A DNA stretch of 61,952 bases, filler included, from Choristocarpus tenellus KU-1152 (Eukaryota > Protista > Phaeophyceae): NCBI GenBank assembly GCA_964200185.2. It is 9 parts of 9 records of this genome, joined end to end, with 100 filler letters (N's around TTAATTAATTAA, not from the genome) between each part and the next. Parts side by side here need not be neighbours in the genome. Positions count along the whole stretch, not along the records: positions 19,061 to 35,978 come from CAXNAD020000744.1; 8 more parts are not named here. The stretch is one strand, 5' to 3'. Both the position numbers and the translations under genes were made by a program. Below, one piece after another: positions 19,061 to 35,978 of the stretch (positions are counted from its first letter, which is position 1; each line of letters starts with the position of its first letter). A model generated the notes under the pieces. That model was not told where the DNA came from and ran no database searches. It saw nothing but the letters and a program-made list of their open reading frames with translations.

Positions 19061-19499
19061 TTAAGACCGTTTTCGCAAAACAACCATCCTCGTAGTCCCG
19101 TTCCATCCCCAATTTTGAAAATCCTCTGTTTTTTGGGGAGTTGATGAAAATAATGCTCCCCCCTCGCGATATCAATGCCAGGGTCGTCTGGTCGGTGGAG
19201 ACATATCATGGGAGTGTTGGGCATGTTGAAGTGCAGATTGGTACTGCCTTGGCCGGTTGGGAAACCGTACACCTAATGCGGCATACAGTTAGTCCCCTCT
19301 TAATTTCGCAGGTTAGCATGTGCAAAGAGGTAGCTGACTATACCGGCTTCTCTTGTCGATACCTTTGACATTTTTCTCCTTGCAGATGGTATTCCAAACA
19401 TTGGGGGAAGGGAAAAGTGTGGAGGGAAATATAAGGGATCAGACGAAGGACTACATGTTCTTTCAATGATGGGTTAGGAGATATCAATGAGGAAGATCA

Positions 19500-21200
19500 T
19501 CAGGATTGGGAGGAAATGGTGCAGGCTTGTAAAATAGCGGACTCATTCGAGGAAACAGAGGAAGAAGGACAGATTAGGTCGAAATTGGCCTTGATTATGA
19601 CTGTTAGGATACTTCTGCAGCCGTTGATCATGCCTCTACAATTCTGTGGGTTCAAATCGAGCTTCAACGTGAGGCCTTGTACAGGAAAAAAGCGATTGCT
19701 TTGAGGAGTTCAGAGCCCTTCTTGACAGCGGTGAGGGGTTAGGAGATCTTGTAGACGCTTGGTCCTAGACTAGTCTACTTTCTGTTCGTGTATTTGACTC
19801 ACATGCAACACCTGTATTGATTTACACTACTGAAGGGGTGAGGGGAAGCCTAGAGGAGTGTCTTATCGTATCAGTTTTTGTTTGCAAATACATTCAGGTG
19901 CTGTAGATATGCAAAGCCTGTGTTGACTTATTGTTAGGAGGGGTGGTGGATCTTATTTTCCTGGAGGATCCATCACCTGTGCCTGCTGACCTGCTATCAA
20001 TAAAGAGAATGATGCAGGATGCTCAATGTGAGCAATGGAAGCAATATTGCTTTCTTCCTTTCACATGGAGAACACTTCGTCCACTCTTGGCATGCCAGGC
20101 ACATACTTCGTCTGTTCTAAAAATACTCGTTGATGCAAGGTAACCTCGGTAGTCTCAACTCAACGTATTTAAGAGAGTAGGGGTTTTATTTGTCCGTTCG
20201 GGGCTTGGCTTCCCATGCGTTTTGTATGCCCTTTTTCGGTTTTCTGTGTGAACATTTCGGATTTCGGACTTCGGAGTAGGTAAAATGTATAGGACTATCA
20301 AAGGTGTGTCAGGAGGAAGGATATTGACACTTCCTAACAAACACGATAGCCAAAACTAATCCAAATCGCAACTTTGGATTTATGACCCCGAACGGACGCG
20401 GCCCTGCCCTCTTAAACGCTTTGACTTTCTCTGCAGGCCTCCAAAAAGTTCATGGGCAATTTCGGTGCAGCTCCCTTAGATCACGCCGCAAATGGTTCCA
20501 TAATGTAATTCATGGAAAAAATGTGCCATGGGCTTCTGACAACCCAGTCGGGTAAGGACCCGTGAACATCCACATACTTGGCCACCAAAACCAGTCACTC
20601 CACACTCCAAGTGGAAGCCTGTTGCTATGCTGAATTGTGAGGGAATGCAAATTTCATAGGGAATTCAAGGTTTACTTCATGTGCACAAATGAATGCAAAC
20701 ATCAGAATGGCAACACATGGTATAATACTGTACTGTCATTGAGCAGAGCATAATTGTAAGCATTTCAGATAAGATCACCTTGGATTCATGTCAATTGTAA
20801 TAGCATGGCATGACGGACTCTCCGAGCTCACATGGCACAGAATCCAACCATCGGTCACAAACATCCCTTGCGGTTGTCCCTTCAACTGGAACATATTTAA
20901 GCAGCACAGGCAGGCTATCAGGACTTGTCGCATTGTGACCATTACACTCCCGCTAGACATGCTTGGCAGGCTCTGGACGTAGGGATATACATTGCACCCC
21001 ACACGATCATCTTCCCAAGCATTTCACTTTATACTCCTGGTCTTTGTAACCGTGACACGGAGAAATTCCTTTCGGATACACAGCAGATCATTTATTGTGG
21101 CGAGTACACGATACTTACAGGTAACCGAGGTGGCATGGTGGAGGAACTCCGCTTCGGGCGAAGAAGGTTGCTTGCGAAGTATAGGGTATACGTACTGTAA
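19500..21200 (-). pseudogene. Possible highly decayed LINE-type reverse transcriptase
   Basis: A minus-strand frame near 20890-20940 reads NATSPDSLPVLLKY, resembling the LINE RT 'KAxGPDGxPxELLK' motif. The rest is full of stops, and the boundaries are approximate. Confidence 0.25.
20157..20427. mobile_element. MITE family A copy, reverse orientation, diverged
   Basis: Contains ggggcttggcttcccatg...gatattgacacttcctaacaaacacgatagccaaaa, the reverse complement of the family A interior. Confidence 0.75.
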
Positions 21201-22447
21201 ACTCAAACAATGATTGTTCATAATAGGGTTAGGGTTAGGATTAGGGCATAATAATAAAACTGATAATGATGCTGGAGTATCCTGGATGAGCTAGGTACGC
21301 ACGCGGTAGGGGGGAGAGGAACTGGAGGCTACAGTAGGAAAGGGACAGTCAAATCCCGCCTACGACAAATAATCTCTGTAACAACGTAGGTGGCCCTGTC
21401 TAGATGTGTAGACGTGTCATGCGCTCTAAGCTGCAGACACCAGGGATATGGGCAAGAAGGGGCTTCCTAGATTCTTGGGATGCTTCCCTACCTAGCTCCT
21501 CACCGTGGGATAGAGGAATAGCTAGATTGGTGACACAGGAAGGCAGTGGTACAGCATAGATAGTGGTGAAGAAACAGTTACTTTTTGGGGGGGTTTTCTG
21601 AAATGTGAATAGTTTTCATTGGTTTTTCCCCCGACACATCTATAAAATGTTGGAGGGAATTAATAATATAATAGTATCGTGGAGTATAGATAAATGGAAA
21701 GGGAGTTGCATACAAATATCAATCCATTTGAGTATCCATGTTGGAAAGGTAGTACAAATATATAAAATCGTATCTTATCCTGTCACATTTCAGATTTTAT
21801 ATTATGTTCAAAAGTTGACTATTCCAAAATGAAGTTCCACTTCTCCTTTTTAGAATATATATATTACATATCTTTTGGGAAATGAAAGTATAGACGTTAT
21901 GGTATTTTGAAATGTATCACATACAGAAAATGAGAAAAACTACATTGACTATGTGGTGGAACTTTTGGTACAAAACAAACAGTAGTAGCCAAGAGTCGAA
22001 GACCTCTGGATTTGATGAGGTGTGTGCTGTGTATTCGACAGAAAAATTGGCATTAAACACATCATTGGTGTAGTTAGTATTAGTAATTGTAGAGAATATA
22101 TATTTGAAGGAAAGGTGGACCTTGTGTCATTATATTACTACTACTATTGTACACAAAAAAGTTTCCTCTAGAAGGTCCCTTCATCTATTGGGTCACAGAA
22201 GATATCACAGAATGACACAAGTATCATATACACCTCGTAATACCATTGGTGAAGGCCAGTCGTCAACCTGTTCACGTAACAGTTTGAGAGCTGGCTCACT
22301 CAAAGGTCAAGCTAAGGGAACAGTGAGGAAGTCCACTCTCGGTATTTTTCGGGTTTTACCATTGCAAGAACTCTCAAAAGTCATTCCTACGACAACCTCA
22401 CCATCTGTCCCATCCAGTGGGAAGGTGGTAGAGAGAGAGAGTGAGCG

Positions 22448-24452
22448 ATGGACAAAGATTGTGCAACGGTCAAACGCAAAACTCATTCAGTCAAAGACTC
22501 TGCAGAGGAAGAACAAGTGACTAGTGGGGGATTCTGGTGAGGACTCAAGGGACAAAAGTAGTGTAGTGGTTACTAAAGGTTGAGATGAAACGAAGTCGAG
22601 CTAGTAGAGACTTGATACCCCCTCCTCATTTTCCCCTTTTCGGCGTTGAATATCCTTGTTTGGACATTTCGTGGGTGAAGGAAACCAAATACCGTTGTGA
22701 GGAAGCATCGTCTCAGGGCCAATTTACTTTGGGCGCTCGCCCTTGTCCTGTTCGTGGTCTACATCGCCATCATCATAGTAGATGCCATAGACAAGCGGAA
22801 AAGTCCGACGGCCAGCATCAAGATTAAGGTAAAGGTAGAGTGGGCATCCCTCGCTTTCAGCGATCATTGTTTGCCACCAAGTGCCGAGGCGATTGTCGCA
22901 CTCCGCGTAGCCTATTGTTGTCAAACACGAACAGAACAAACACGAAGTCACAGGGTGCCATCATGATTACGTCCAGTCGGTTCGTTGCGCATTTAGACCT
23001 CTACACAGAAATCACACCCCCTTCTCTCCCACCTTTCCCCACGCCATTTGATTTCTCTAGGACGAACTTTTCGGCTTCCCAGACGTCGCGCTTTGTCTCC
23101 AGGAAAACCAGGGCTGTACTACCGCTGGAGCAGACTGCATTCAGTTAACCTCCTTCTTTTATCTTGCCTACGAAGAGGTGAACTGTCTTTCTGACTTGGC
23201 CAAAACCCAGACCCGTAGTACCCCTGGTTATTGGTCGAAGAGGGTCACCCACCCATTCCGCCAAAAGATTAGTGGATCAACCACTATGCCAAACACAGCA
23301 CACCCATCCGTACTTGAATTTCTGTCGGATGGAAACCACGTTGCGAGGTCATACATAGCTAAGTAGCCCTAGACCTTGCTCCTAGCAGGGGTTCGGAGGG
23401 ATCAGTCATATCAATCAGACGGGTGCATCTTTGCAGTTCGAGTACAACAATCCGAACTGCAAGGCACTTCCTTTGAAGGACTTGGAGATTGTCGGCAGCC
23501 CCAATGAGCTGTTGTTGAACTTGCAGGTGAGCTTAATGGTGTAGTGTAGTGCCTTGCCGCTTGTTTCCTTGTGATGGTCTGGTAGTAGGGTGGTGTGCAA
23601 CCACAATATCTCCACAAGTGGGCAATATGATTTCTGTCCCTGCCCCCGTTGGCACATTTGTTGGTCTTGTACACAATCTTTTTGGTAACCTGTCCAAGAA
23701 GTTTTCCATTATCCCTTACGAGAATAGTATCGTGTGTCCTCTGTTTAAGGTATTCTGTTCCAATGCATGTGCACAGAATGCAGAAGAGACTGTGAATGAC
23801 CCTTCTGACCAATAATAAAGGCACAAAAACCATTCCTTCGAAACTGCAATACGGAATAGCTCTAGATTTCCAAGAGTTCACTGTAGCTCCTTTCACTTTA
23901 AAGTGTTTTTAGTGATCCAAGTAGTCTAACTTGCTTTATACTATCACTTCAAAGTTGGGTGACCACTCCAGTGCCCCACACAATGGCAGATGCTGTGGTA
24001 CCACAACGCGGAAAATGTAACAGATATTAACTACCACGACTGGTGGGTAGACCTGTATTTTCTGGACCTGGACAAAAGTGGGGGCTCTAAGGGTGTTGTT
24101 GATGCCAGGCTTCCATACAACACACTGAATTTAACCACGAACAGTCACTACTCCTATGAAAGCAGTGACGTGGTGAGCATAGATGATGTTCCGCATGCCC
24201 TAGTGCTGCTATTTTGTTTAATTACTTCAGATAAAAAATTTGGAATGAGTTATCATGATGTTTTGTTGTGACTGGACAAGTTAGTAGTTCAGAGTGTGCA
24301 TTACATGACAACTTGGACATACGTGTCAGTTTCACTTGCATTAAATTAGTGGGGGAGTGTCTCAGTGCTTTTGTGGAAAGAAGGGAAGGAGTGGCAGGAA
24401 AACATGTGCTCAACACAATTGTTCCATTTATTTGTGTGCGCATGCGTGCATG

Positions 24453-24487
<35 letters not shown>

Positions 24488-27400
24488 GATCGTCATACTC
24501 TTACAAGTATTGTAATCTGAACGATTTTGTACTATCTCACATCAGTTCAGGATCATGTCTCACTCCAAATTGTGTATGAACGCCACATGAAAAGTAAGAT
24601 GCTAGAGAGCATCAAGGGTAGTATGTCCAAGTTGTCATGTTATTCACGATTTTTCGACCTGCTCGTGTCTCTGCTCCTCACTCTTAAAGGTAATGTCAGT
24701 GAGAGAGTATATCAACCTGAAACCCGCGGGAGGCAAGGAGGATCCACAGAAGGTCTACTCCCATGTATGTCTCTTACAATGTAGCATAGTCTTACTTTTT
24801 AAAGAGTGAATAAAGTTTGATAAGATTATTCCAGGCAACTAACGACACTGAAGTAGTGGTAACGATACTTCTATTGTGGGAAGGGTGGTTGCAGTTTAGA
24901 AGAGCTGGAATATCACATGATTGTTCCTCAAGATCCTTTGCTACTAAACGGTTAGGGGTGTTGTGTTAGTGCTACTTTCCCCTTTTTTGTTTGTATCTCT
25001 GGTTGCACCGACATTGCCTGACTGATTAGATACACTGCCCTCCAGACCCTGTCAACAACCAGGTCCCTACGTTACTGGGATCGACCAGGTTACAATGGGG
25101 AGCAATTTGAGTTCATAAATCTTAATCTCTACATTCTGGGTTTCCGATTTGAATCGATTGAGGAGATGGATCCTGTAGACATGTGGGCAATCATTGGCGC
25201 CATAGGTGGAGTCTGGGGTGAGTACAAATCTTTCATATGTCAAGGGGGTATGTTAGTCCAAATTGAAGGCATTCCTTGTTCAATTTTTACTCTTTCAACT
25301 TCTTATTACCAGATGGGGAGCTGTGATAGGACGTTTAGGGAGGTTCACATGTGGGCTTATCTATATTGACAATTTATTGAACCCTTCTCTCTCTGATTGT
25401 GTAGCTCTTTGAAAATTACTTCACTAAGAAGTAGTGTACAAACCAGGTGGGGGGACAGTGCCAAAGGGAATAGTATTAGTTGTAGTATACTGTATTGTAT
25501 TTTTCCCCATGTCATTACCCATCGGTGTTGTGCAGGGATCAACAACTGCTTGCACAGTGTCCAGACATATGGTTTATTCAATGCGCACACCTTGTGAGTT
25601 GCTAATAATAAAATTCAAGGGTAACAACTTCCCCTCCCTCCAACCTAGGATCCTCCTTGGTTGAGATTCTCCTCATGGAACTACCCTCATTCTTGTGGGT
25701 CTCTCCGATTTCTTGGAAATCTTGGTTTGACTATGTCAACAGTTCTGTTAAAGGCTAAGCCTGACAGAGGGCTAGAGGGTATTTGTACTTGGAATCCACT
25801 GTTCCAGTACGTCTCTTCAAACTCTTGGAATCTTGGTTTGACTATGTCAACAGTTTTGTTGAAGACTAAGACTGAGAGAAGACTGGAGGGCATTTGTACT
25901 TGGACTCCACTATTCCAGTACGACAAGGATGCAGTCCCCATCCTTGCCCTTCCTGTGGCACCAAAGAGATGCAGCGATTCAATATTTAACCAGTGTCATC
26001 TTTCCATGGAGTTTTCTGTTCCCTGTACCCAACTTTCTCCTTACTCTCATACCTCCACCCGATGCAGATATTATTTGTGTAGGATTCGGAATCTTCTTTG
26101 TGTACTCGGAAAAGCAGAAGCCTGACAAGAAGCTGCGTAATTGGACCAAAAGCGTCAGCAAGGCTACAGAGGTCATCAGGGGCCGACATCCTACCTCTGT
26201 CACCTTTAGCGTGAGAACTATAGACCCCCTCCCCCCCCCTCACCCCACCCCTTGATCCAAGGTCCTTTGATGTCATTGTATCTTGAAACGAATAGGTACT
26301 AGCTGATGCCACCCTGTAGTTATAACTTTTCTATATAAAGCACCTCTATTTTCTGTGATGTAGACCTGTGTGTCCAGACTCATATCTTTGTGCGTGGGCA
26401 AAATATGGTTCCCCTTGCAAACACACGTTGTGCTTCTCAGTGTATCAAAGTTGAAAGTGTTGTTGTGTGAATCCTGCCTTCTGCTTGTGCTCTTTTGCAC
26501 CTCCTGTGTTCAAAGAGCACCTGTACGCATGACCTCACTCTTGGACTTATGGCTAGTGAGTGTTTGCAGAGACCTACAGGCATTGCTGATTGATAACCCG
26601 CCCGTCCCCACCAGTTCCTTAAAACGCTTGTGTGTAAAACAAGCATACTTTTCAACAGCAAGCAAAGGTAGAAATATTACAATTAAGTATCTGAGAAGAT
26701 TTCGAGTCTTCTACAGCTGCCTGTCCCAACCTACCCTCCTCCTTCCGCTCTTTATGATTTTGCACTGGTATTCCTGGCGTTTATATGCTCCCTCTATGAC
26801 ACGTTATGGTAGTTCGTCCACTGAGTGACTTGAGCAGCTCCTGAACAGTTTTCTGTTAAATCTCTCTTTAGGACGCCGTTTACAAAAGGTTCCACATTCA
26901 TCAATATGTTGATCCCCTGAAGCGGTGAAGAAAAAAGGGTCCTAACAATCCACCCTTACTGACTTGCCATTCCCTTACATATATATACTTGGATACCAAG
27001 GACTTGTTCCCAATTCTCCCAACCCCCTCTTTCACCGGTGCTAGGGTGTCGAATTGGATGTAACTGGAGAGGATCTTCCCCCAGATTGGCTGAAGAAGAA
27101 GCGACCTAATGGTTCTGTGTACTACATCAACATGAGGACAGGGGAGTTCCTTGATAAGTCTCCCTTGAGCACACACCCACTTGGGAGTGGGGTGAGTCTC
27201 TGTGACACCAGTGGTTCCTGGAACAGGTCGCAGGTGAGCTGAACATGATATAGGAAAAAGCTCTAGAGCTCTAAGCAAGATTTTTTGGTTTCTCATTTGC
27301 CCCAGGATACTATAGCCCTCCTCAATAATGGAATCCCCCCCCCCCTCTCTCTCCCCAACCCACAGCTGTTGCACTATCTGTGGGGGAGGAGCATGTGCCT

Positions 27401-30400
27401 TGTTTTGTGCTGCCAATGTAGATAGTATGTGTTTCTACAATGCATATTTTTGTAGCTCTGTTCCCTTTGTGGAAACCAAAAACTTGGTGCTGGTGGTGGA
27501 TATAAGATTAAGTCAACATTACTATTGCTGTATAGTACGTGAGTAAATTCATGTTTACACTATGAAATGTTTAGGGCATACAAAAACTGTATAGTTACAA
27601 AGCCTTTGTTGTAAGCATCGAAGACTCTTTTTTGGTGTTCATCATCCTTTCTTGTACGTTTCTTTCTCCCTTATGACACCACCTACAGCACACCTGGGCT
27701 TAAAAAGTACTATAAATTTATGTAGGGCAGAGGTGAGAGCACTGCAGCAGCACAGTATTAAATTATCTCATCTTTGTGTGTGTTCCAGTGCTGACTTTAC
27801 ACATCTGTAAATGCCTCGCATGTCTTGTGAGAGTCAACCCCTCAGGGTGGAAGGGAGAAGAGCAAGAAGCAACTATAAGGGAGTCATTTTTTAGTCTAGT
27901 CTTCTTTCTCCCCCTTGAGTTTTGTTCAGTCCTTGTGCTGCAGAGTAATTTGCAGGGTGGTTAGAGTCCTTGCAGGGTGCACGTGCATGTTGTGCATGGC
28001 TCACATTTAACCCTTGAGATACTGCATTTACTGTTCGGAGGCAGCCTTAACATATCGGAGCTTATCTATTTTTTCTTTGCTGAATCTTAGGTACAACTAA
28101 ATGTAGTTCGTGCACTACAATATATGCTGTGTGTATCTTTCACTGGTTCTTTTCCCTTTCCACCCAAACCTCAGGGTATGGATTGTCTCTGGCGTTCTAG
28201 AGTTCAATTTTTTCTTATCAAATAAGGATTTTCAATTCTCTTCTTGTCTCATCCCTATATTTCCACATTGCCAGATTTCTTCTGTAGCTTCACTCAATGT
28301 TTGATTGACTCGTCACTTTGCACCAGAGAGAGACCATACCTTGAGGATATCACACTGGGGCAGTTTTTTCCATTGAAAAGTCATTTCTTGAAGTGGATTT
28401 TAAAACGCCTTTACTTTGATTATTTTAACACGTTTGAAAGTCTTACAGAGGGTATTTGCATGCCCCATCGTTATCTCCTACTTACAGTTTACAGTGCCTC
28501 TGACATTGGCTGAAATGTACCCAACGAGTAACAGGGAAATACAAAGCACTCCGAAGTGTGATATGGTCTCGAAAACATTTACATTCAACTTCTTAACATC
28601 ACACAAAGGGAGGGGCTTGATTTTATTCAACAAATTAGTACAGGCGATCGTTAAATTGCATGTTGGCAACCAACCCCTACTATTGCAGCCCTTGTTATTC
28701 TTTCTGGTACTTGGTTGTGATATTCCACCACCTGCCATTCACCCCTCACATTTTCCTGTCTGACCCCTCGATCCTCAGTTGAACAGGTCTGGCCTTGTGT
28801 CATACATGGGTGACAGGGCCGACCTCAAGGTGCGTTGGTCGTGTGGATCGGTATTTGGCAAGCATTTTTATTCTCATATAATCGAGAAATATTTTGGTGA
28901 TATTGTTATGTCCAAATACCTGGAATTGATGATGAGTTTATATTTAAGTTGGAGGTAACTTGAGTTTATTGTTTGCGTACTGGGCATTAAAACGTTGGTA
29001 TTTGAGCATTGTCACTGTCTTGAGTAAGATGAGTACACTACTTGAACATATTTGGTGTGTTAGCATGTTTGGGATGACGACTGAAGGATGTGGCTTTGAA
29101 TTTTGCGATTGGATATGTAGCGAGGATAGAAGTTGTGCAAATATCATTTAGGGGTCTGGCTTGGACGGCAGGCATCCCTGCGCTGGGAGGTTGAGAAATG
29201 TACATGGAAATATTGGAGGTAGAGTGTGGCATACGGTGACTGCAATGTTTGAAAAGGGTAGGCTGAATATATGTGGGGATGGTATGAAGGAGTTAAAGTT
29301 GGGGGAACATGCTCACAACTGTCTCCTACCAGTTTTCCTCACACTAATACATCCAAATCAAGAGTTTTGTAAGATTGAAAAAGTCTCGTACCGTACCCGA
29401 GCGTTTGGGGCATGTTTGGCATCTCACTGGCGTCAGTAGTTTGGGCCCCAAGGAGTTGACCCCATTCATCTATCGGTAATCCAATAGCATGTTGATTTTA
29501 TGCCAAGGGTAAAAATAGAAAATTTAGGGTGTTCCGTCAATAGTTATGACAGGGAATCTCCTCTTCACTTCAGTTGTGAGGTTTGTATCTACATGCAGCT
29601 CCTCTTACAGCCTTGGTCCTGCTTGACGTTAGAGCTGCATTTCAGGCGAGACTGTGATTGAGCATGAATTTACAATCTGTCAGAAATTGAGTTTTCTGTC
29701 GCTGTTTGTAGATTAGATACATCCCTTACGGATGTTAATGTATTTGGTGAAAGTCTGAAGTGTCAATTCGATCCTGACTTTTCTGGTTCTAGCATACTCT
29801 GGGTTAAGTACTGTAAATATATGTATCCTCATCTCTCTCAAAGCATGAATGTTCACATGATATTTACATTCTTGATGGAGACAACCGTTTGATGTGGATC
29901 TCCAGTCTCACCCTTAGTTCAAAACCTCACTTCACCCTCCTTTGTGGGAATACAGGAGGAGGATGAACTTCCCGATGGGTGGGTGAAGAAGACAACTACC
30001 AATAGGAATACATGTAGGTCTAGCTATAGAGCCTTTCCCCCCCTTCCCGTTTCTCACCATTCCATACCTATCCCTTGCTAAGCATTCACTTCAACATTGT
30101 GTATAGAACCTGAGCTACCTACTATACAAGGGCCGTACAATATGATAGAGATGATAAGGGTTTCGTTCTGTGTTGCAGTGCAAATGTGCTGTCACTAGAG
30201 TCAATCCCATCAATCAATCTCCCCTTCTCCCCCACCTCTTCTGCTATCATGTCCAATAGGTAGTTTCGTGTTGTATTTTGCTAGTGGCGATCTTAGAGGT
30301 AGTAGGGTTGTACATTTCTACCTGCCTCCTCCCTCCCCCCCTTCCCCTGATTATGGTAGGTTGCAATACAGCCGTATTTGTAAGGTCGTATTTTCAGTGA

Positions 30401-33220
30401 CTACTGTCCTTGCAAATCGGATATTAAAGTACCTTGTATGTATCCTCTCGTTTCTTACGAATTTATGGTAGACACTCTCCTTCTTTCCCCTTGCACATAT
30501 ATTGGGGAGGCTCTCCTTGTTGAATGTATTTCTACTGTGTGTATCATTCATACGCACATCTGCGGCTTTTTTCCAGAAAGAAACGTTTTCCGCGTTTTTT
30601 TGTAACGGCTTGGGGTTCTGTTGTCTTCAATTGAGCTCATCACTTCAGACCTGTTTGATTGTGATATATTCCGAGTGCCTACTTGTATGGTGGGTTGTTA
30701 ATGTGTCTATTGTGACCCAGCCCAAATGAAATGACTTTGGATTGGCCAAGAGCCAAAGTAAACCAGAGGTCCTCAGTTTTTGCCCGTAACACATTATAAG
30801 TCAGTTTTTCAATCTTTTGCAATTCGCCCATATTTCTATGGATGAAGTGCTAACTTTGACTCATGAGAGTTAGTTCATTCTTTGTTTGAAATATTTGGAC
30901 ATAATTCGGAATATATCCTACACACACTACTACCAAAAAAAGTCGAGTTTTGCATATTTTTGCCGACATCCTTAAAATACAACTTTGAGCACCTCTCCCT
31001 TACTTTGTCTCCAAGCGCTCATCTACTCATCTCTCGTCCTCCCGTCCCTTCGACTTGTGCTATTGTACCAATGTATACTTCGTGGCCAACTTCGCATTCT
31101 GTCACTGCAGACTACCAGGACGAAATCAACAAGGTGGTGAATATTTCAAGTGTACATGAACAGCTTCACATTTTGATGGCGACTTCTTTTCTGGATAATA
31201 CCTGGTTATTTTTGCTATTATTATCCTCTCATAAAAGGACTGATGTGTGAGCTGGCATAGGATGAAAAGTTCGTGAGCCCATGTCTTGTAATAACATATT
31301 TTGACGTGCTTTTTCTTATTGACCCCTTTTCACCTGTGCAGTCCCACCTCCTCCCCCCCTGGTGCAGACAATAGCTTGATGTGTTCTGTACTGTATATCT
31401 GTTGATCTAGTATGTCAAAATCATGACCTAAGACCAACTCAGATCAATGTTCCCTTTGCTTGTACCAAAAAACCCCGATGTACTGCCGGTCTGGAATAAA
31501 AAAACTTCGATTGAAGACAACCTCTTGGGAGAGACCCACACCCCAAGGGACACCGGTGTTCAACCGCCCTACATCTCTTCCCTCAAGGCTGAGCAGGGCT
31601 CAGCAAGTAGGCCCCCCTGCACCATGCTCTGCAGTGGGGCAGAGCATGTCCCAACTGGAGCAGGCACCTGAAAGCCCACCCTGTGCCCCGCAATCCATAG
31701 TGCCAAGGCCAAGAAGTAGGTTACCTCAGCAGCCTTCGCGTGGGGGTGGGCGATCTCCTCAGAGATTCAGTTGGCCATTTTCCATGGCATCACCAAGACG
31801 ATGTTCTTCTCCGATTGGTCCATCCAAGAAGTCATCATCTCTAGTGTCACCACCGAGAACAATTATGGCGCCAGTTGGGCTCTCAGCGGTAGGCTCTCAA
31901 TCCTTGATGCAAGGGGGGGGGCACCTCCCAGGAAATAGCGCAGTACCTCAAGGATGGTGTGTGGAATTCAGTGAGAGGGGTACACCTTGTGAGTAATCCC
32001 ATATGCAATGTTTGCCCAAATCCTTTCAACCACGCCTCGTTGACCTTCCCACCCCCAACCAATAGCTGTATACTTTGAGCAGTTTGACTTTCTGGGGGAA
32101 TATTCTCAAGAGTATTGGGCTACCTTGGGGAGCTAAGTGTAAGATTTGGAGCTTTTCCTTGTTACCAATTTTTTAAGTATGCAAATGCAGTCATTTTTAG
32201 GTTGTATAGGAGTATCCCACAGGATTGACGACACAATTATGCTAGTAGAACTCTGTTCAGTGCTGAGAGCACCAGTTGTTTTGTTGAGGACTAGGTGAAA
32301 AACATCAAGGACTGTTAGGCACAAGTGTCATATCCATCTGAAGCGGGTGATAATTGACTCATGAGAATAATGATGTTTGATTACTATTGCCTAACATTTC
32401 CCTCTTTATGCCCCCCTTTCTTCATGGTTGGACTCCTTGGTGGCTCACTCCCGCCTCGTGTTCACTCGATTGGGGTCCCATCCAGTTTTGAGAAACCCTA
32501 TGACAGGGGAGACTTCGGTGAGATTGGGTGTTGTTGGGTATCCACAGATGACTACAGCACTTGGCATGTGTTACCCAGACTCAGGCCTATCAAATACATC
32601 TAACCTCTCTACCACAAAACAATCACTATTGAGAAAAATATCTTTCCAGGATTGAGGGTGACCCTGTCCAATGTGAATACCAATTGGGGGTTCCCCCCTG
32701 GGTAGGTACACTTGACTGTTCCTAGCCAATGCAGTTGGAACTGAAAATGAACCTGTTTTTTTGTGTTGTTAAACGGCACCGATCGATGAAGATCTGGCGA
32801 GTAGTATTTGGTGATGAAGTAAGCAGGCTGTTTCTGAGGATACACGTGCTGACCTCCACTGTATGGCATAAGCTCAGTTTGAGTTTTCTTTGACAGGGTG
32901 TAATGAAGAGCTTAGGTGGGGTTACAGTGTGGTTCCTCTTTTCTGTAATGTGTGTCTGGTCACATATCAACTCACAATAGATCCATTGTTCCACCCCGTC
33001 CCTGCTGATTCCTGTCCTGATGTGATGTGGTACCTGATCAGCGGATTCATCCCATATAGGGGATTGTTCAATAGTTTGAGTGATGTATATCGCCATGGAG
33101 GCAGAATCAGAACCCCTGGGAAGAGGGGAGAAATGCAGAGGTGATGATAATTGTGCTGCTACAACCATGTGCCGACCTGGAGACCAGTGCAGCTTGTTTT
33201 AGTGGGAGAGAGATAGATGA
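22448..33220 (+). CDS. Two-TM PAC(TMEM206)/ASIC-ENaC-like putative ion channel with three C-terminal WW domains (~620 aa)
   Basis: Phase-consistent exons 22448-22536, 22681-22828, 23061-23177, 23437-23526, 23990-24172, 24690-24764, 25046-25217, 26068-26210, 27045-27233, 28779-28829, 29956-30013, 31111-31133, 31517-31988, 32486-32517, and a tentative last exon 33203-33220. TM1 is LLWALALVLFVVYIAIIIV, followed by SPTASIKIK...FPDVALC. TM2 is ESIEEMDPVDMWAIIGAIGGVWDIICVGFGIFFVY. WW1 is LPPDWLKKKRPNGSVYYINMRTGEFLDKSP, WW2 is LPDGWVKKTTTNRNTYYQDEINKTTSWERP, WW3 is VPQGWCVEFSERGTPFLRNPMTGETS(W). Confidence 0.75.
25711..25922. repeat. Intronic tandem duplication, two ~110-bp units
   Basis: tcttggaa(a)tcttggtttgactatgtcaacagtt...atttgtacttgga.tccact.ttccagtacg occurs twice in tandem. 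Confidence 0.85.
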
Positions 33221-34721
33221 GCTTGACCTTGAGGTCCAGCCTTCAACTTTTCTTGGGTTATATTTCAATCAAAATAGGAACACTTGAGTGCTCACTATGG
33301 AGACAATTTTGATTTCCCATGTTGAGTTTGTGTCTTGGTAGTATTTGTATTAACAGTTTAGACTAGAGTGTGCTGCTTTCCGCACATGGTTGTTTTTGGT
33401 TTCCTTGTATAAGTATTGTTGTAGAATGTGCTCTTTCGCCACAACATGCTTCTTTGGAAGTTTTTGTTTCTTGTACTACTGTAGATATGTTCAATAGGTT
33501 CAAGTAGTACAGTTTCCTACGCTTTTTTTCTCCTTTGAGGAATAGTTGACTGTACTACTGTGCTGAACTGCAATGTTATTTTACATATCGTATAAGGGCA
33601 TGTATTCGTATTGTTGTGTCATACAGGTATTTTACCATACACATGTACTACTACACAGGACTTTTCGTCTTTTTGTTCAAATTTAGAAAAAGCACGAATT
33701 TGGAGTTTGTGTGAGAGTGACTTGAGGTATAGCGAAACATATTTTCACTTTTCTGTATGTTTTAGTGCACAGTGGTGATATCAGTAAAACATAAAGCTGT
33801 ATATTTCAAGTTCATAATGGAGTGCAATTATAACATTTCACGATTGAAAGGACGTAATAGTGACTGAAGTTTATCGATTTTATCAGGATTCGGGTTAGTG
33901 GGTTGTTCATTATCACAAACCTCGTGACCTACCTGGAAGACTCAGTTGTTTCGCCATTGATCTTCATCGCTTTTGATGCAGGATGATGTTCCCGGTCAGT
34001 GATGATTCTTGGATTCAAGGCACGAAAGTTGACCTATTGGAAGTAGATGATTGGTACTCCATGCTATTTGTTAACCTTTCCCCTTTTTTCTTTGAGGTGC
34101 ATAATTTGCATGTATACTATTAGTACATGACGGTTCTTTCAGCCAAGAACGGATTGCAAAAGACGGGTTCATACCTACTTCCTATCATACCATCTCTTAA
34201 GATGGTTGAGTCAAGAAAAAAATTCAAGACCAACAGGGTACTTTAAGCCATCATGAGGAATCATTCCCACCATGATTCAGCCTCAATTCAAGCCGTCAAC
34301 ACCTCTTGTGCATAAAACATCAACGGCAGACACACACCCCCATACAACACAACATGCCATTATCCTTCAGTGAGAAAAGAAATCCCACTTCAGTCATGTA
34401 CTCACGAGTACACAATTTAAATGATGATAATAACCCTTTCCACATAAGAGTAAATGGATAAGTACATATAAACCCTTGCAAACTGGATGTCTCCTACCCT
34501 TCTCAGAGTATGGAAGCATCTCAATCGTGCTGGTCAAAAGACTGCGCATAAAAAATGAACTCAAATTCGACAAGGGAATTTGAACTAGTTCTGTAGAGGT
34601 CCAGCCTCAAGCAGAATCTGCAATACAGTGTGATGTCTGCGCATTGTACAACATAAAATGTCTCATACATGAAACCAGTAAGAAAGTTCAACTGTTGAAC
34701 TTTCTTCGCATGAGAAAACCC

Positions 34722-35978
34722 TCAGCTCTGCTGACCAAATCCGGCAACAAAGATGACAATAGCCAACATCAGAGAAAACGCACACAGCTCCATCAAGAGC
34801 CGCCTACGCGATTCAGGCTTCACCTGCTTTGATAAAAATTACGGGGTATTTTGAGGGGTGAGGGGCAGTAAGGGGAAGCATGAAATCCATTAAGATATGA
34901 AAAGAACACTGGGTGAGCACGATGTATGAAAGTGGAATGTGTGCAATAATCATGGTAGTTTTTGCAGGTTGTGGTATCAACACCACAATGCACTATAATG
35001 TCATAGCAGAGATATTTTATATTCCATGGTTCCATGCCGAGTACTAGGGCAGTGGAAGCAGTTCACACCAAACAAAGTCACAGGATCATGTACTTGATTT
35101 GCAGTTTCATTTGGGGGGCGGAGGGGGGGAGAGGGGGTGGACTGGGTTGGGATGAGTGTCATAAACCAGAAGAGGTGCGACTGGATGTCATATGAGATCT
35201 GTTGAATAGTGGACTGAGTTGAGGCCACAGCCACAGAATCCCATCCACCTAATGTTCAGGGTTGGAAACCTTGGTGGACTCTGCAGGACAATGTAAAGGG
35301 TTACACACAAATACCACACATTGCAAGTATACCAATTGAGTTCGCGATTCATTCATTGCACAGACACAGCTTTAGACTGTGGGAGAGTACACAAGTGGTG
35401 AGTTGACATGGATAGGATACGGGATATGCCTTTAATGCAATTCATAATATCGTATAGCCTACACATTGCTGTTGTAAGGAAGTATGCTCAATTTTGTCAC
35501 TGCAATACCCTATACTTGAAAGACAAAAGCAACACAAGCACCACAGCTAGAAAAACAACTGCACTGTAGAGGTGTGACTACTGTGTATTAGTTAGAGCCA
35601 TGACACACGTGTATCAATTGCTCGTTCAACACCTGAAGAGCACCCCCTCTGTAGCAAAATATTGAGGCCAACACCCTGTAAAAACAAAAGAGAAGAATCT
35701 GCCACCCTGTCAAGCCTAGTATGCAACTCCTGAGAGCACATCACATCATCAATCAACCTCTTCCAGGGCAGATAGATCCCTCTCTCCAGTCACCTTTGTC
35801 AGGCACCACACCCTGATGGGGTTGGTGTGGCCCCCACTTGAAGCTCGTCCACTAGAGATCTCCATGCGGGCATAGGGAAGCCCCTCCAAGTTGGAGCAGA
35901 GTAAGCGCTCTTCCTTGGCCTTATCGCCCCCCCCCTGCCCTCCCCCAAGCCCCTCCGTTCCCATACCAGAGTCGATCC
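34722..35978 (-). CDS. 3' end of an unidentified gene with a C-terminal hydrophobic (tail-anchor-like) segment
   Basis: Candidate terminal exon 34722-34823 follows a cag acceptor and reads VKPESRRRLLMELCAFSLMLAIVIFVAGFGQQS*. A candidate upstream exon at ~35794-35978 is open to the contig end. Confidence 0.45.

Follow-up and report, generated by a model that had tools for sequence, protein, structure and literature searches.

The gene described here lies in a window of 61,952 nucleotides from Choristocarpus tenellus KU-1152 (assembly GCA_964200185.2), the window being the whole stretch of DNA that was analysed, nine parts of nine records joined by filler. Choristocarpus tenellus is an early-branching brown alga and thus a stramenopile. 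The part at positions 19061-35978, from CAXNAD020000744.1, is 16,918 bp long with G+C of 38-50% in 1-kb windows, and carries on its + strand, at 22448-33059, a gene of 15 exons with a start codon at 22448. Very probably, this is a real single gene in which a two-pass transmembrane (TM) part with the fold of PAC (TMEM206) and DEG/ENaC channels is fused to a tail of WW modules. Apart from a spurious one described below, long open reading frames (ORFs) are lacking in this part, and the + strand shows only short in-frame blocks linked in phase by GT-AG boundaries. In a scripted path search, which tried all GT/GC-AG pairs up to 8 bp from each exon boundary, a single GT-AG exon path was found to translate exactly to a database protein of 635 amino acids (P0001). 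This protein is 100% identical over residues 251-307 to the exon 7 query (phmmer, 1.84 billion representatives), and is named by its source “unnamed protein product [Choristocarpus tenellus].” Exons were queried singly in the searches, and the full-length analyses used P0001. An earlier note on this DNA had proposed that short exons, mostly missed by the ORF track, splice in phase into one protein in an alga-like genome; the unique path to P0001 bears out the former, and the brown-algal, stramenopile source of P0001 the latter.

Reads from three public runs of the organism (X1, X2, and X3), none of them labeled as RNA, were aligned over 22400-28399. X1 and X2 yielded unspliced contigs and are thus DNA. 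X3, a run of unlabeled kind, behaves as RNA: its depth peaks on exons (about 70-150 vs. 0-40 in introns), and at each exon boundary from exon 1 to exon 9 its contigs are joined with GT..AG ends. Among these joints is 26210>27045, which connects the TM2 exon 8 to the WW1 exon 9 at a depth of 121, its shorter side spanning 144 bases. A loose end of X3 at 27237, at exon 9, continues with the first bases of exon 10. The splice between exons 8 and 9 assumed in the earlier note is therefore seen in a contig with GT..AG ends, and this joint, with the same fusion in Ectocarpus, Pylaiella, Scytosiphon, and Ascophyllum, assigns the WW exons to the same gene and not to a separate one. X3 also contains an unspliced contig across intron 9 (27204-28399) at a depth of 28.6, vs. 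about 94 on exon 9, and shows lower depth in other introns; this intron signal suggests that the library contained pre-mRNA, transcripts with retained introns, or some DNA.

The exons are as follows; helices are those of the AlphaFold2 (AF2) model described below, and joints are those of X3 contigs.

22448-22536, + strand: exon 1, start codon and cytosolic N-terminus, residues 1-30, ending in phase 2 (P0001 match; joint 22535>22680)
22681-22828, + strand: exon 2, conserved pre-TM1 VVRKHR, TM1 (about residues 45-63), and DAIDKRKSPTASIKIK (joint 22826>23059; AF2 helix 32-69)
23061-23177, + strand: exon 3, post-TM1 strand FPDVALC and C91, C98, and C105, three of the four conserved ectodomain Cys (joint 23175>23387)
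23389-23526, + strand: exon 4, ectodomain with an N-Q-T sequon and the fourth conserved Cys, C142 (joint 23522>23986)
23990-24172, + strand: exon 5, ectodomain beta strands with invariant W167, P206, and Y207 and two N-x-T sequons (joint 24171>24689)
24690-24764, + strand: exon 6, 75-bp ectodomain exon, VMSVREYINLKPAGGKEDPQKVYSH (joint 24764>25046)
25046-25217, + strand: exon 7, last palm-like strands, acidic EEMDPVD, and the first half of TM2 (WAIIGAIGGVW), ending in phase 1 (joint 25216>26067)
26068-26210, + strand: exon 8, second half of TM2 (DIICVGFGIFFVY) and the invariant basic EKQxPDKKxRNxxKS (joint 26210>27045; AF2 helices 296-321 and 326-347)
27045-27233, + strand: exon 9, WW1, an atypical WW-like module (EDLPPDW...YYxN..TG....SP) lacking the second Trp (Pfam WW; X3 loose end at 27237)
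28779-28829, + strand: exon 10, linker between WW1 and WW2 (P0001 match; its first bases are the loose-end consensus of the X3 contig)
29956-30013, + strand: exon 11, first part of WW2, EEDELPDGWVKKTTTNRNT (P0001 match)
31111-31133, + strand: exon 12, 23-bp micro-exon with the middle of WW2, YYQDEINK (annotated protein and homologue alignment only)
31517-31988, + strand: exon 13, end of WW2 (TTSWERP), Pro/Ser/Arg-rich linker, and start of WW3 (VPQGWCVEFSERGTP) (P0001 match)
32486-32517, + strand: exon 14, middle of the degenerate WW3, FLRNPMTGETS (P0001 match)
33042-33059, + strand: exon 15, end of WW3 (RIHPI) and stop, with Arg at the position of the second Trp of homologues (P0001 match)

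The encoded protein consists of an N-terminus, TM1, an ectodomain loop, TM2, a basic helix, and WW modules, with a tail of about 310 amino acids. The loop of about 229 amino acids (residues 67-295) contains three N-x-T sequons and four Cys, all four of which are conserved in homologues, and N-x-S/T sequons and conserved Cys are confined to it. In P0001, DAIDKRKSPTASIKIK is located at residues 64-79, FPDVALC at 85-91, and ESIEEMDPVDMWAIIGAIGGVW at 286-307. TM2 is WAIIGAIGGVWDIICVGFGIFFVY; in its V-G-F-G stretch F314 and G315 are invariant, while G313 varies. A VV(K/R)xHR motif is conserved at residues 37-42 and in homologues, 5-6 residues before TM1. DEG/ENaC channels have a conserved His-Gly before TM1, and the algal family keeps the His, followed by Arg instead of Gly. 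In PAC, a basic residue at the cytosolic end of TM2 sets anion selectivity; the algal TM2 is directly followed by the invariant pair E322-K323, which may or may not be equivalent to the PAC lysine. The order of elements given in the earlier note, from the N-terminus to the WW tail, is thus found entire on the + strand, and so are the post-TM1 FPDVALC strand and the pre-TM2 strand leading into TM2; its Cys-containing loop with N-x-T sites likewise stands, but the length of about 215 amino acids given there has to be raised to about 229, with the 75-bp exon at 24690-24764 included.

An AF2 model of P0001 residues 1-350, built from a 33-row alignment, has two long helices around a mostly beta domain, with a predicted local distance difference test (pLDDT) of 70.3 and a predicted template-modeling score (pTM) of 0.57; the helices 32-69 and 296-321, which correspond to the two TM segments, flank the beta-rich domain. 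When this model was searched against PDB by Foldseek, the best 50 matches were all PAC/ASOR/TMEM206 (E 5e-11 to 1e-7) or ASIC (from E 5e-8). In VIA-align comparisons, where two long helices are common to both sides, PAC (7sqg_A) gave Z 12.7 and a root-mean-square deviation (rmsd) of 5.5 Å with 237 of 270 residues aligned, ASIC1a (9e4d_A) Z 12.0 and rmsd 4.5 over 259 residues, ENaC (9btu_C) Z 11.7 and rmsd 3.7 over 191 residues (ENaC range Z 11.5-11.7), and FaNaC Z 11.3-11.4. Furthermore, in an exhaustive scan of 48,161 representative chains, independent of Foldseek, ranks 1-11 were all PAC or DEG/ENaC members (PAC, ASIC, ENaC, FaNaC, PDPNaC1, ASIC5, and BRTNaC1; Z 10.0-12.2 over 166-267 residues), and from rank 12 onward only helical hairpins appeared, with Z of 8.2 or less over 68-95 residues. 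A second AF2 model, that of the Ectocarpus protein P0013 (37% identity, pLDDT 68.3), again retrieved PAC first (E 3e-8), followed by BRTNaC1 and ASIC1. Because nearly the whole PAC subunit is covered, the gap to unrelated chains is clean, and the result is replicated with P0013, the assignment of the predicted channel part to the PAC/DEG-ENaC fold is solid. At comparable coverage the predicted ectodomain and TM helices match PAC and ASIC/ENaC/FaNaC only, so that the predicted ectodomain is not one without palm similarity.

Shape neighbors were also found in the ESM Atlas. By TM-score (template-modeling score) normalized to the query, an ASC cluster reached 0.57 and unnamed Mucoromycota clusters 0.51-0.56, beside PAC and ASC clusters. 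The Mucoromycota neighbors comprise unnamed clusters of 277, 483, and 708 amino acids and a 1002-amino-acid cluster with Kelch repeats. These may be further unrecognized PAC/DEG-ENaC-fold proteins that carry cytosolic interaction domains, a hint that the fold is more widespread than known and has been fused to such domains repeatedly.

Prediction of a complex supports a homotrimer with TM2 on its axis. Three copies of residues 33-345 were run with three controls, and the trimer reached an ipSAE of 0.52 vs. 0.00 for the best control. The ipSAE mark was calibrated on two copies: among proteins solved as pairs of one chain, 21 of 30 attain it, and among those solved as single chains, none of 23. 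Agreement of contacts between runs is at least 51%, with partner pLDDT of at least 52. Confident contacts are formed by TM2 residues 297-309 of all three copies (e.g., 301-301, 304-305, and 305-305) and by strands 71-78, 251-258, and 288-291 around the axis. The pore of DEG/ENaC channels, and probably that of PAC, is lined by the TM segments and chiefly by TM2 (PMC6663466). Both structural checks suggested in the earlier note, a fold search against known channels and a trimer prediction, hence gave matching channels and a pass over controls.

At the level of sequence, the signal is to ASC (PF00858). In a Pfam search with 24,736 profiles, exon 2 (TM1) alone matched ASC at E 0.1 (profile 15-55) and exon 7 (pre-TM2 and TM2) alone at E 0.33 (profile 399-439), two weak matches that are collinear and lie at opposite ends of one profile. 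In all six members with a complete N-terminus, ASC was the sole or top family for the channel part (E 4e-5 to 0.08; 22.2 bits for P0001 and 20.7, 22.6, 12.3, 23.2, and 20.8 bits for the others). The match covers TM1 and the FPxVxxC strand, profile 15-73 and up to 111 in homologues, with E of 4e-5 to 2e-4 in five members. The TMEM206 profile PF15122 gave no match at E up to 10 in the six channel parts. Exon 7 had one chance-level match only against PDB sequences, and exon 5 gave only sub-0.9 rows against ESM Atlas features, from unrelated bacterial and PD40 clusters. The family is nearer to PAC by shape and size, and by sequence has a DEG/ENaC signal only. The rank of PAC, first in Foldseek for both models, agrees with the view of the earlier note that the protein recalls PAC more than ENaC; the sequence signal, in contrast, is only to ASC.

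The gene belongs to a family. The phmmer search with exon 7 found 35 further proteins besides P0001. Full-length alignments were obtained with P0006, P0008, P0010, P0012, P0013, and P0032 (439-647 amino acids, with the motif) and with P0037-P0039. It is no chance pattern: the same architecture is present in at least nine independently predicted proteins from five brown-algal genera. The named sources, Ectocarpus spp., Pylaiella littoralis, Scytosiphon promiscuus, and Ascophyllum nodosum in addition to Choristocarpus, belong to several brown-algal orders, and several paralogues are found per genome. Members begin with a cytosolic VV+xHR, TM1, FPD(V/L)A(L/I/V)C, and a loop of about 230 amino acids with four Cys and N-x-S/T sequons, and share a near-invariant TM2 block, (I/V)E(E/Q)(V/M)DP(V/M)(D/N)xW(A/S/T)I(I/V)G(A/S/T)(I/V)GG(V/I)W. 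After TM2 come EKQxP(D/E)xKxRNxxK(S/T), a WW-like module about 40 residues on, and, in longer proteins, one or two canonical WW domains. The family alignment has 44 invariant columns, clustered in the pre-TM2, TM2, post-TM2, and WW1 regions. About 25 short predicted fragments (within P0002-P0036), many of them single-exon predictions, lose homology exactly after GGVW and continue with unrelated residues, which fits a phase-1 intron conserved after GGVW across brown algae. The homologue of Ectocarpus siliculosus is labeled “similar to NEDD4-like” by its source because it was named from its WW domains only. In a word-indexed search, P0001 retrieved only itself, and the channel-only alignment seven brown-algal proteins; that with the full-length alignment was saturated by WW words, and its only addition was P0040, a WW-only match. 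Taken together, the family is a real branch of the PAC/DEG-ENaC fold, spread across brown algae and so far undescribed, whose domain architecture is new.

There is also a second subfamily, with WWALLGSAGGVW. At an Ectocarpus sp. 4 locus (CAXMZY020001639.1), its protein ends soon after TM2, and tblastn found no WW in the 4.6 kb downstream of this paralogue. The WW fusion therefore marks one subfamily and not all paralogues. The Ectocarpus sp. 4 paralogue (L001:7390-11821) is annotated as two genes, of 229 and 190 amino acids, which jointly cover TM1 to TM2, and it has a short Cys-rich tail.

The WW modules of the tail differ from each other. The Pfam WW profile (PF00397) has a cut-off of 26.9 bits, and its signature is two Trp about 20-22 residues apart and a conserved Pro. 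WW2 (residues 440-469) is canonical with 30.6 bits and is the only Choristocarpus WW above the cut-off. WW1 (residues 366-395) has 23.2 bits, covering profile 1-25 only (Pfam E 4e-5 to 7e-5; 27045-27191), and in every member takes the form E-D-L-P-x-x-W ... Y-Y-x-N ... T-G ... S-P, without the second Trp. WW3 (residues 606-635) is degenerate with 16.9 bits, YY being replaced by FL and the second W by R. In Ectocarpus P0013, WW2 and WW3 have 48 bits each; canonical WW domains are WW2 in Choristocarpus and WW2 and WW3 in Ectocarpus and Ascophyllum, ranging from 30.6 to 48.4 bits. The three WW domains proposed earlier are accordingly reduced to one canonical domain, WW2, with a truncated WW-like module before it and a degenerate one after it. 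Since WW1 is invariant, lacks the ligand-binding Trp, and lies about 40 residues after TM2, it more likely has a structural or gating role beside the basic post-TM2 helix. In Choristocarpus, nine S/T-P sites follow the start of TM2, all in the tail. The linker between WW2 and WW3 is rich in Pro, Ser, and Arg; it has no Pfam match in exon 13 and is probably disordered.

Several other features of the part at 19061-35978 can be mentioned. Eight other ORFs, on both strands, have no Pfam match and look like chance ORFs in introns and flanks, and no Rfam family reaches threshold in this part. Intron 7 contains a tandem repeat at 25711-25922 (111-bp unit, 1.9 copies, 88% matches), and the spurious long ORF at 25661-26125, without Pfam match, is due to this repeat. 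In intron 5, the segment 24438-24500 is of low complexity and TG/GA-rich; the DNA contigs of X1 and X2 break there, and its reads were skipped as repeat. At 24843 in intron 6, the window has C and the X1 and X3 contigs have T, while X2 covers the site without T; this is probably a polymorphism or an assembly difference.

How might such a protein work? We consider it rather likely that it is the subunit of a homotrimeric two-TM channel of the DEG/ENaC/ASIC-PAC superfamily, ion conduction included. That it conducts ions, with what selectivity and upon what stimulus, and which ligands its WW modules bind are inferences by analogy with known systems. The N-terminus and tail would be cytosolic, and the ectodomain, compact, glycosylated, disulfide-bonded, beta-rich, and PAC-sized at about 229 amino acids, would face the outside or an organelle lumen. 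Three TM2 helices would meet at the threefold axis through the invariant G301-x-x-G304-G305, with an invariant acidic ring of E289, D292, and D295 at the outer mouth and the invariant basic segment E322-K323-Q324-x-P-x-x-K-x-R-N at the inner mouth. The ectodomain may sense protons, another ion or a ligand, or strain of the wall or membrane, upon which the TM2-lined pore would open. The E289/D292/D295 ring and the E322-K323 pair are candidates for selectivity and gating, in a pore that may pass either cations or anions. On the cytosolic side, a trimer would present up to nine WW-type modules, and its canonical WW domains could dock partners with PPxY-like or phospho-Ser/Thr-Pro motifs, so that trafficking, turnover, or signaling proteins would be recruited directly. 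Carried on the channel itself, the WW domains would reverse the polarity of the pair formed by the ENaC PY motif and the Nedd4-2 WW domains.

Several observations weigh against this channel proposal, in whole or in part. The global TM-scores to solved channels are low (0.30-0.45, with rmsd of 4-6 Å), and the confidence of the models is moderate (pLDDT 68-70), the alignment being shallow and restricted to brown algae. In the trimer runs pLDDT is 53-56, and the pass may reflect the memory of the predictor for solved PAC and ASIC trimers. The six channel parts do not reach the ASC gathering score of 23.6 bits, the best having 23.2; this narrow miss and the complete miss of the PAC profile are the reason for filing the family as a separate branch of a common fold. 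The family profile gave no match at E up to 10 against PDB sequences. G/SxS is the selectivity-filter motif of DEG/ENaC in TM2 (PMC6663466); G-x-S is absent from the algal TM2, and no place could be assigned to the filter in it. The junctions of exons 10-15, outside the read-covered span, are based on the annotation and homologues. As to the tail, two of the three Choristocarpus WW modules lack the ligand-binding second Trp, and a canonical PPxY is absent from the tails except in one Scytosiphon protein; because of these two facts, the docking capacity of the Choristocarpus protein may be small.

Three other explanations have to be weighed. A protein of the same fold need not be a channel: it could, though this seems unlikely, be a two-pass surface receptor or scaffold, trimeric or otherwise assembled, whose PAC-like ectodomain binds a cell-wall or extracellular component and whose WW tail couples this binding to proline-motif proteins of the cytosol without ion permeation. 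A shared fold shows no function, and half of the protein is a tail built of protein-interaction modules; yet all solved proteins of this fold that the searches returned are ion channels. The post-TM2 helix and WW1 are conserved as strongly as TM2, and a G/SxS filter was not identified in TM2, which would suit a receptor, but the top conservation falls in TM2, with the invariant G-x-x-G-G and flanking charged rings, as for a pore and not for a mere anchor. The fungal shape neighbors fused to Kelch repeats suggest a two-TM module as an anchor for interaction domains; against this stands the location of TM2 on the axis of the predicted trimer. It is very improbable that the protein is a two-pass cargo receptor of the ERV/ERGIC type in the early secretory pathway, with a luminal beta-sandwich merely resembling PAC. 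ERGIC_N/COPIIcoated_ERV clusters do appear among the shape neighbors in the ESM Atlas, but their TM-scores by query (0.38-0.42) fall short of the 0.57 of the ASC cluster and the 0.51-0.56 of the unnamed fungal clusters, the top rows of both PDB structure searches are free of ERV and ERGIC structures, and neither Pfam ERGIC_N nor COPIIcoated_ERV matches at E up to 10. This similarity was therefore set aside.

The remaining explanation, an artefact of the gene model in which the channel gene ends after TM2 and the WW exons are a separate downstream gene, is scarcely credible. It is contradicted by the spliced X3 contig (26210>27045, GT..AG, depth 121), although X3 also has unspliced contigs over intron 9 and a read-through of exon 8 unspliced at 26210 would meet a stop at 26253, 14 codons on. 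The paralogous subfamily of Ectocarpus sp. 4 does end shortly after TM2 with no WW downstream; in contrast, the fusion is present in at least nine proteins from five genera, where the invariant columns of the linker and WW1 are contiguous with TM2, and an in-frame ATG is lacking in the WW1 exon.

Homologues of TMEM206 have been reported from no organisms other than vertebrates and a hemichordate, and no paralogues are known (PMC6663466). Outside animals, homologues of Deg/ENaC have been reported only from a few unicellular species, Cafeteria and Tunicaraptor (PMC10507113). To the statement of the earlier note that these families are mainly known from animals it has to be added that DEG/ENaC had already been reported from a few protists. 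Because of these protist homologues (PMC10507113), the presence of the fold in a stramenopile is less unprecedented than the architecture. The Phaeoexplorer survey of 60 brown-algal genomes screened 12 ion-channel classes, and its text has no ENaC, ASIC, or “WW domain” (bioRxiv 10.1101/2024.02.19.579948). In the literature searched, no paper on a brown-algal family combining the PAC/ENaC fold with WW was found, and a channel with its own WW domains, which the earlier note did not recognize, has no description there.

A wider reading is possible but more doubtful than not. According to it, brown algae have a third, hitherto unrecognized branch of the PAC/DEG-ENaC fold, in which the link between WW and PY is built into the subunit, so that the trimer would be an ion-conducting sensor and a nine-module docking platform at once, and the fold would be ancient and widespread in eukaryotes. 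If this is true, the branch would have originated at least at the split between Discosporangiales and other brown algae. With the Mucoromycota shapes, the fold would have been repeatedly coupled to cytosolic interaction modules, instead of being an animal invention with stray protist copies. A conserved multi-paralogue family in multicellular organisms only distantly related to animals would extend the range over which the fold is known, and its minimal ectodomain would be a way to ask what the core palm does. Brown-algal physiology would gain a candidate sensor for pH, ionic, osmotic, or wall sensing. Furthermore, the built-in WW modules make the connection between ENaC and Nedd4 testable from the opposite direction, and Ectocarpus, with several paralogues, is a natural organism for testing a connection of this type.

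Compared with known systems, the algal protein resembles PAC/TMEM206 in its two TM helices and compact beta-rich ectodomain of about 220-230 amino acids, in the structural matches (best in Foldseek for both models and in VIA-align with Z 12.7, nearly the whole subunit being covered), and in a trimer with TM2 on the axis, predicted in the algal case. It differs from PAC in sequence, with about 10% identity in structural alignments, in having a WW tail of about 310 amino acids vs. a short C-terminus, and in having several paralogues per genome, unlike TMEM206. With DEG/ENaC it shares two TM segments, a large loop, the post-TM1 strand, the entry from pre-TM2 into TM2, a palm-centered fold (Z 10-12), and, by prediction, a trimer with TM2 along its axis, and the G-x-I-G-G at the start of the algal TM2 presumably resembles the corresponding stretch of ASIC. 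Compared with the solved DEG/ENaC chains, the algal ectodomain is smaller by about 140-250 residues, so that of their 342-525 residues only 166-271 align; it lacks the thumb, finger, and knuckle elaborations, and has four Cys in the loop, where canonical members have many more.

The tail is comparable to Nedd4 in its canonical WW domains, WW2 in Choristocarpus and both WW2 and WW3 in Ectocarpus and Ascophyllum. Animal ENaC has PY motifs of its own, which are bound in trans by the WW domains of Nedd4-2 (PMC2582799). In place of PY motifs read in trans, the algal protein has WW modules in cis, and, unlike Nedd4, with neither C2 nor HECT, it carries these modules on a membrane protein.

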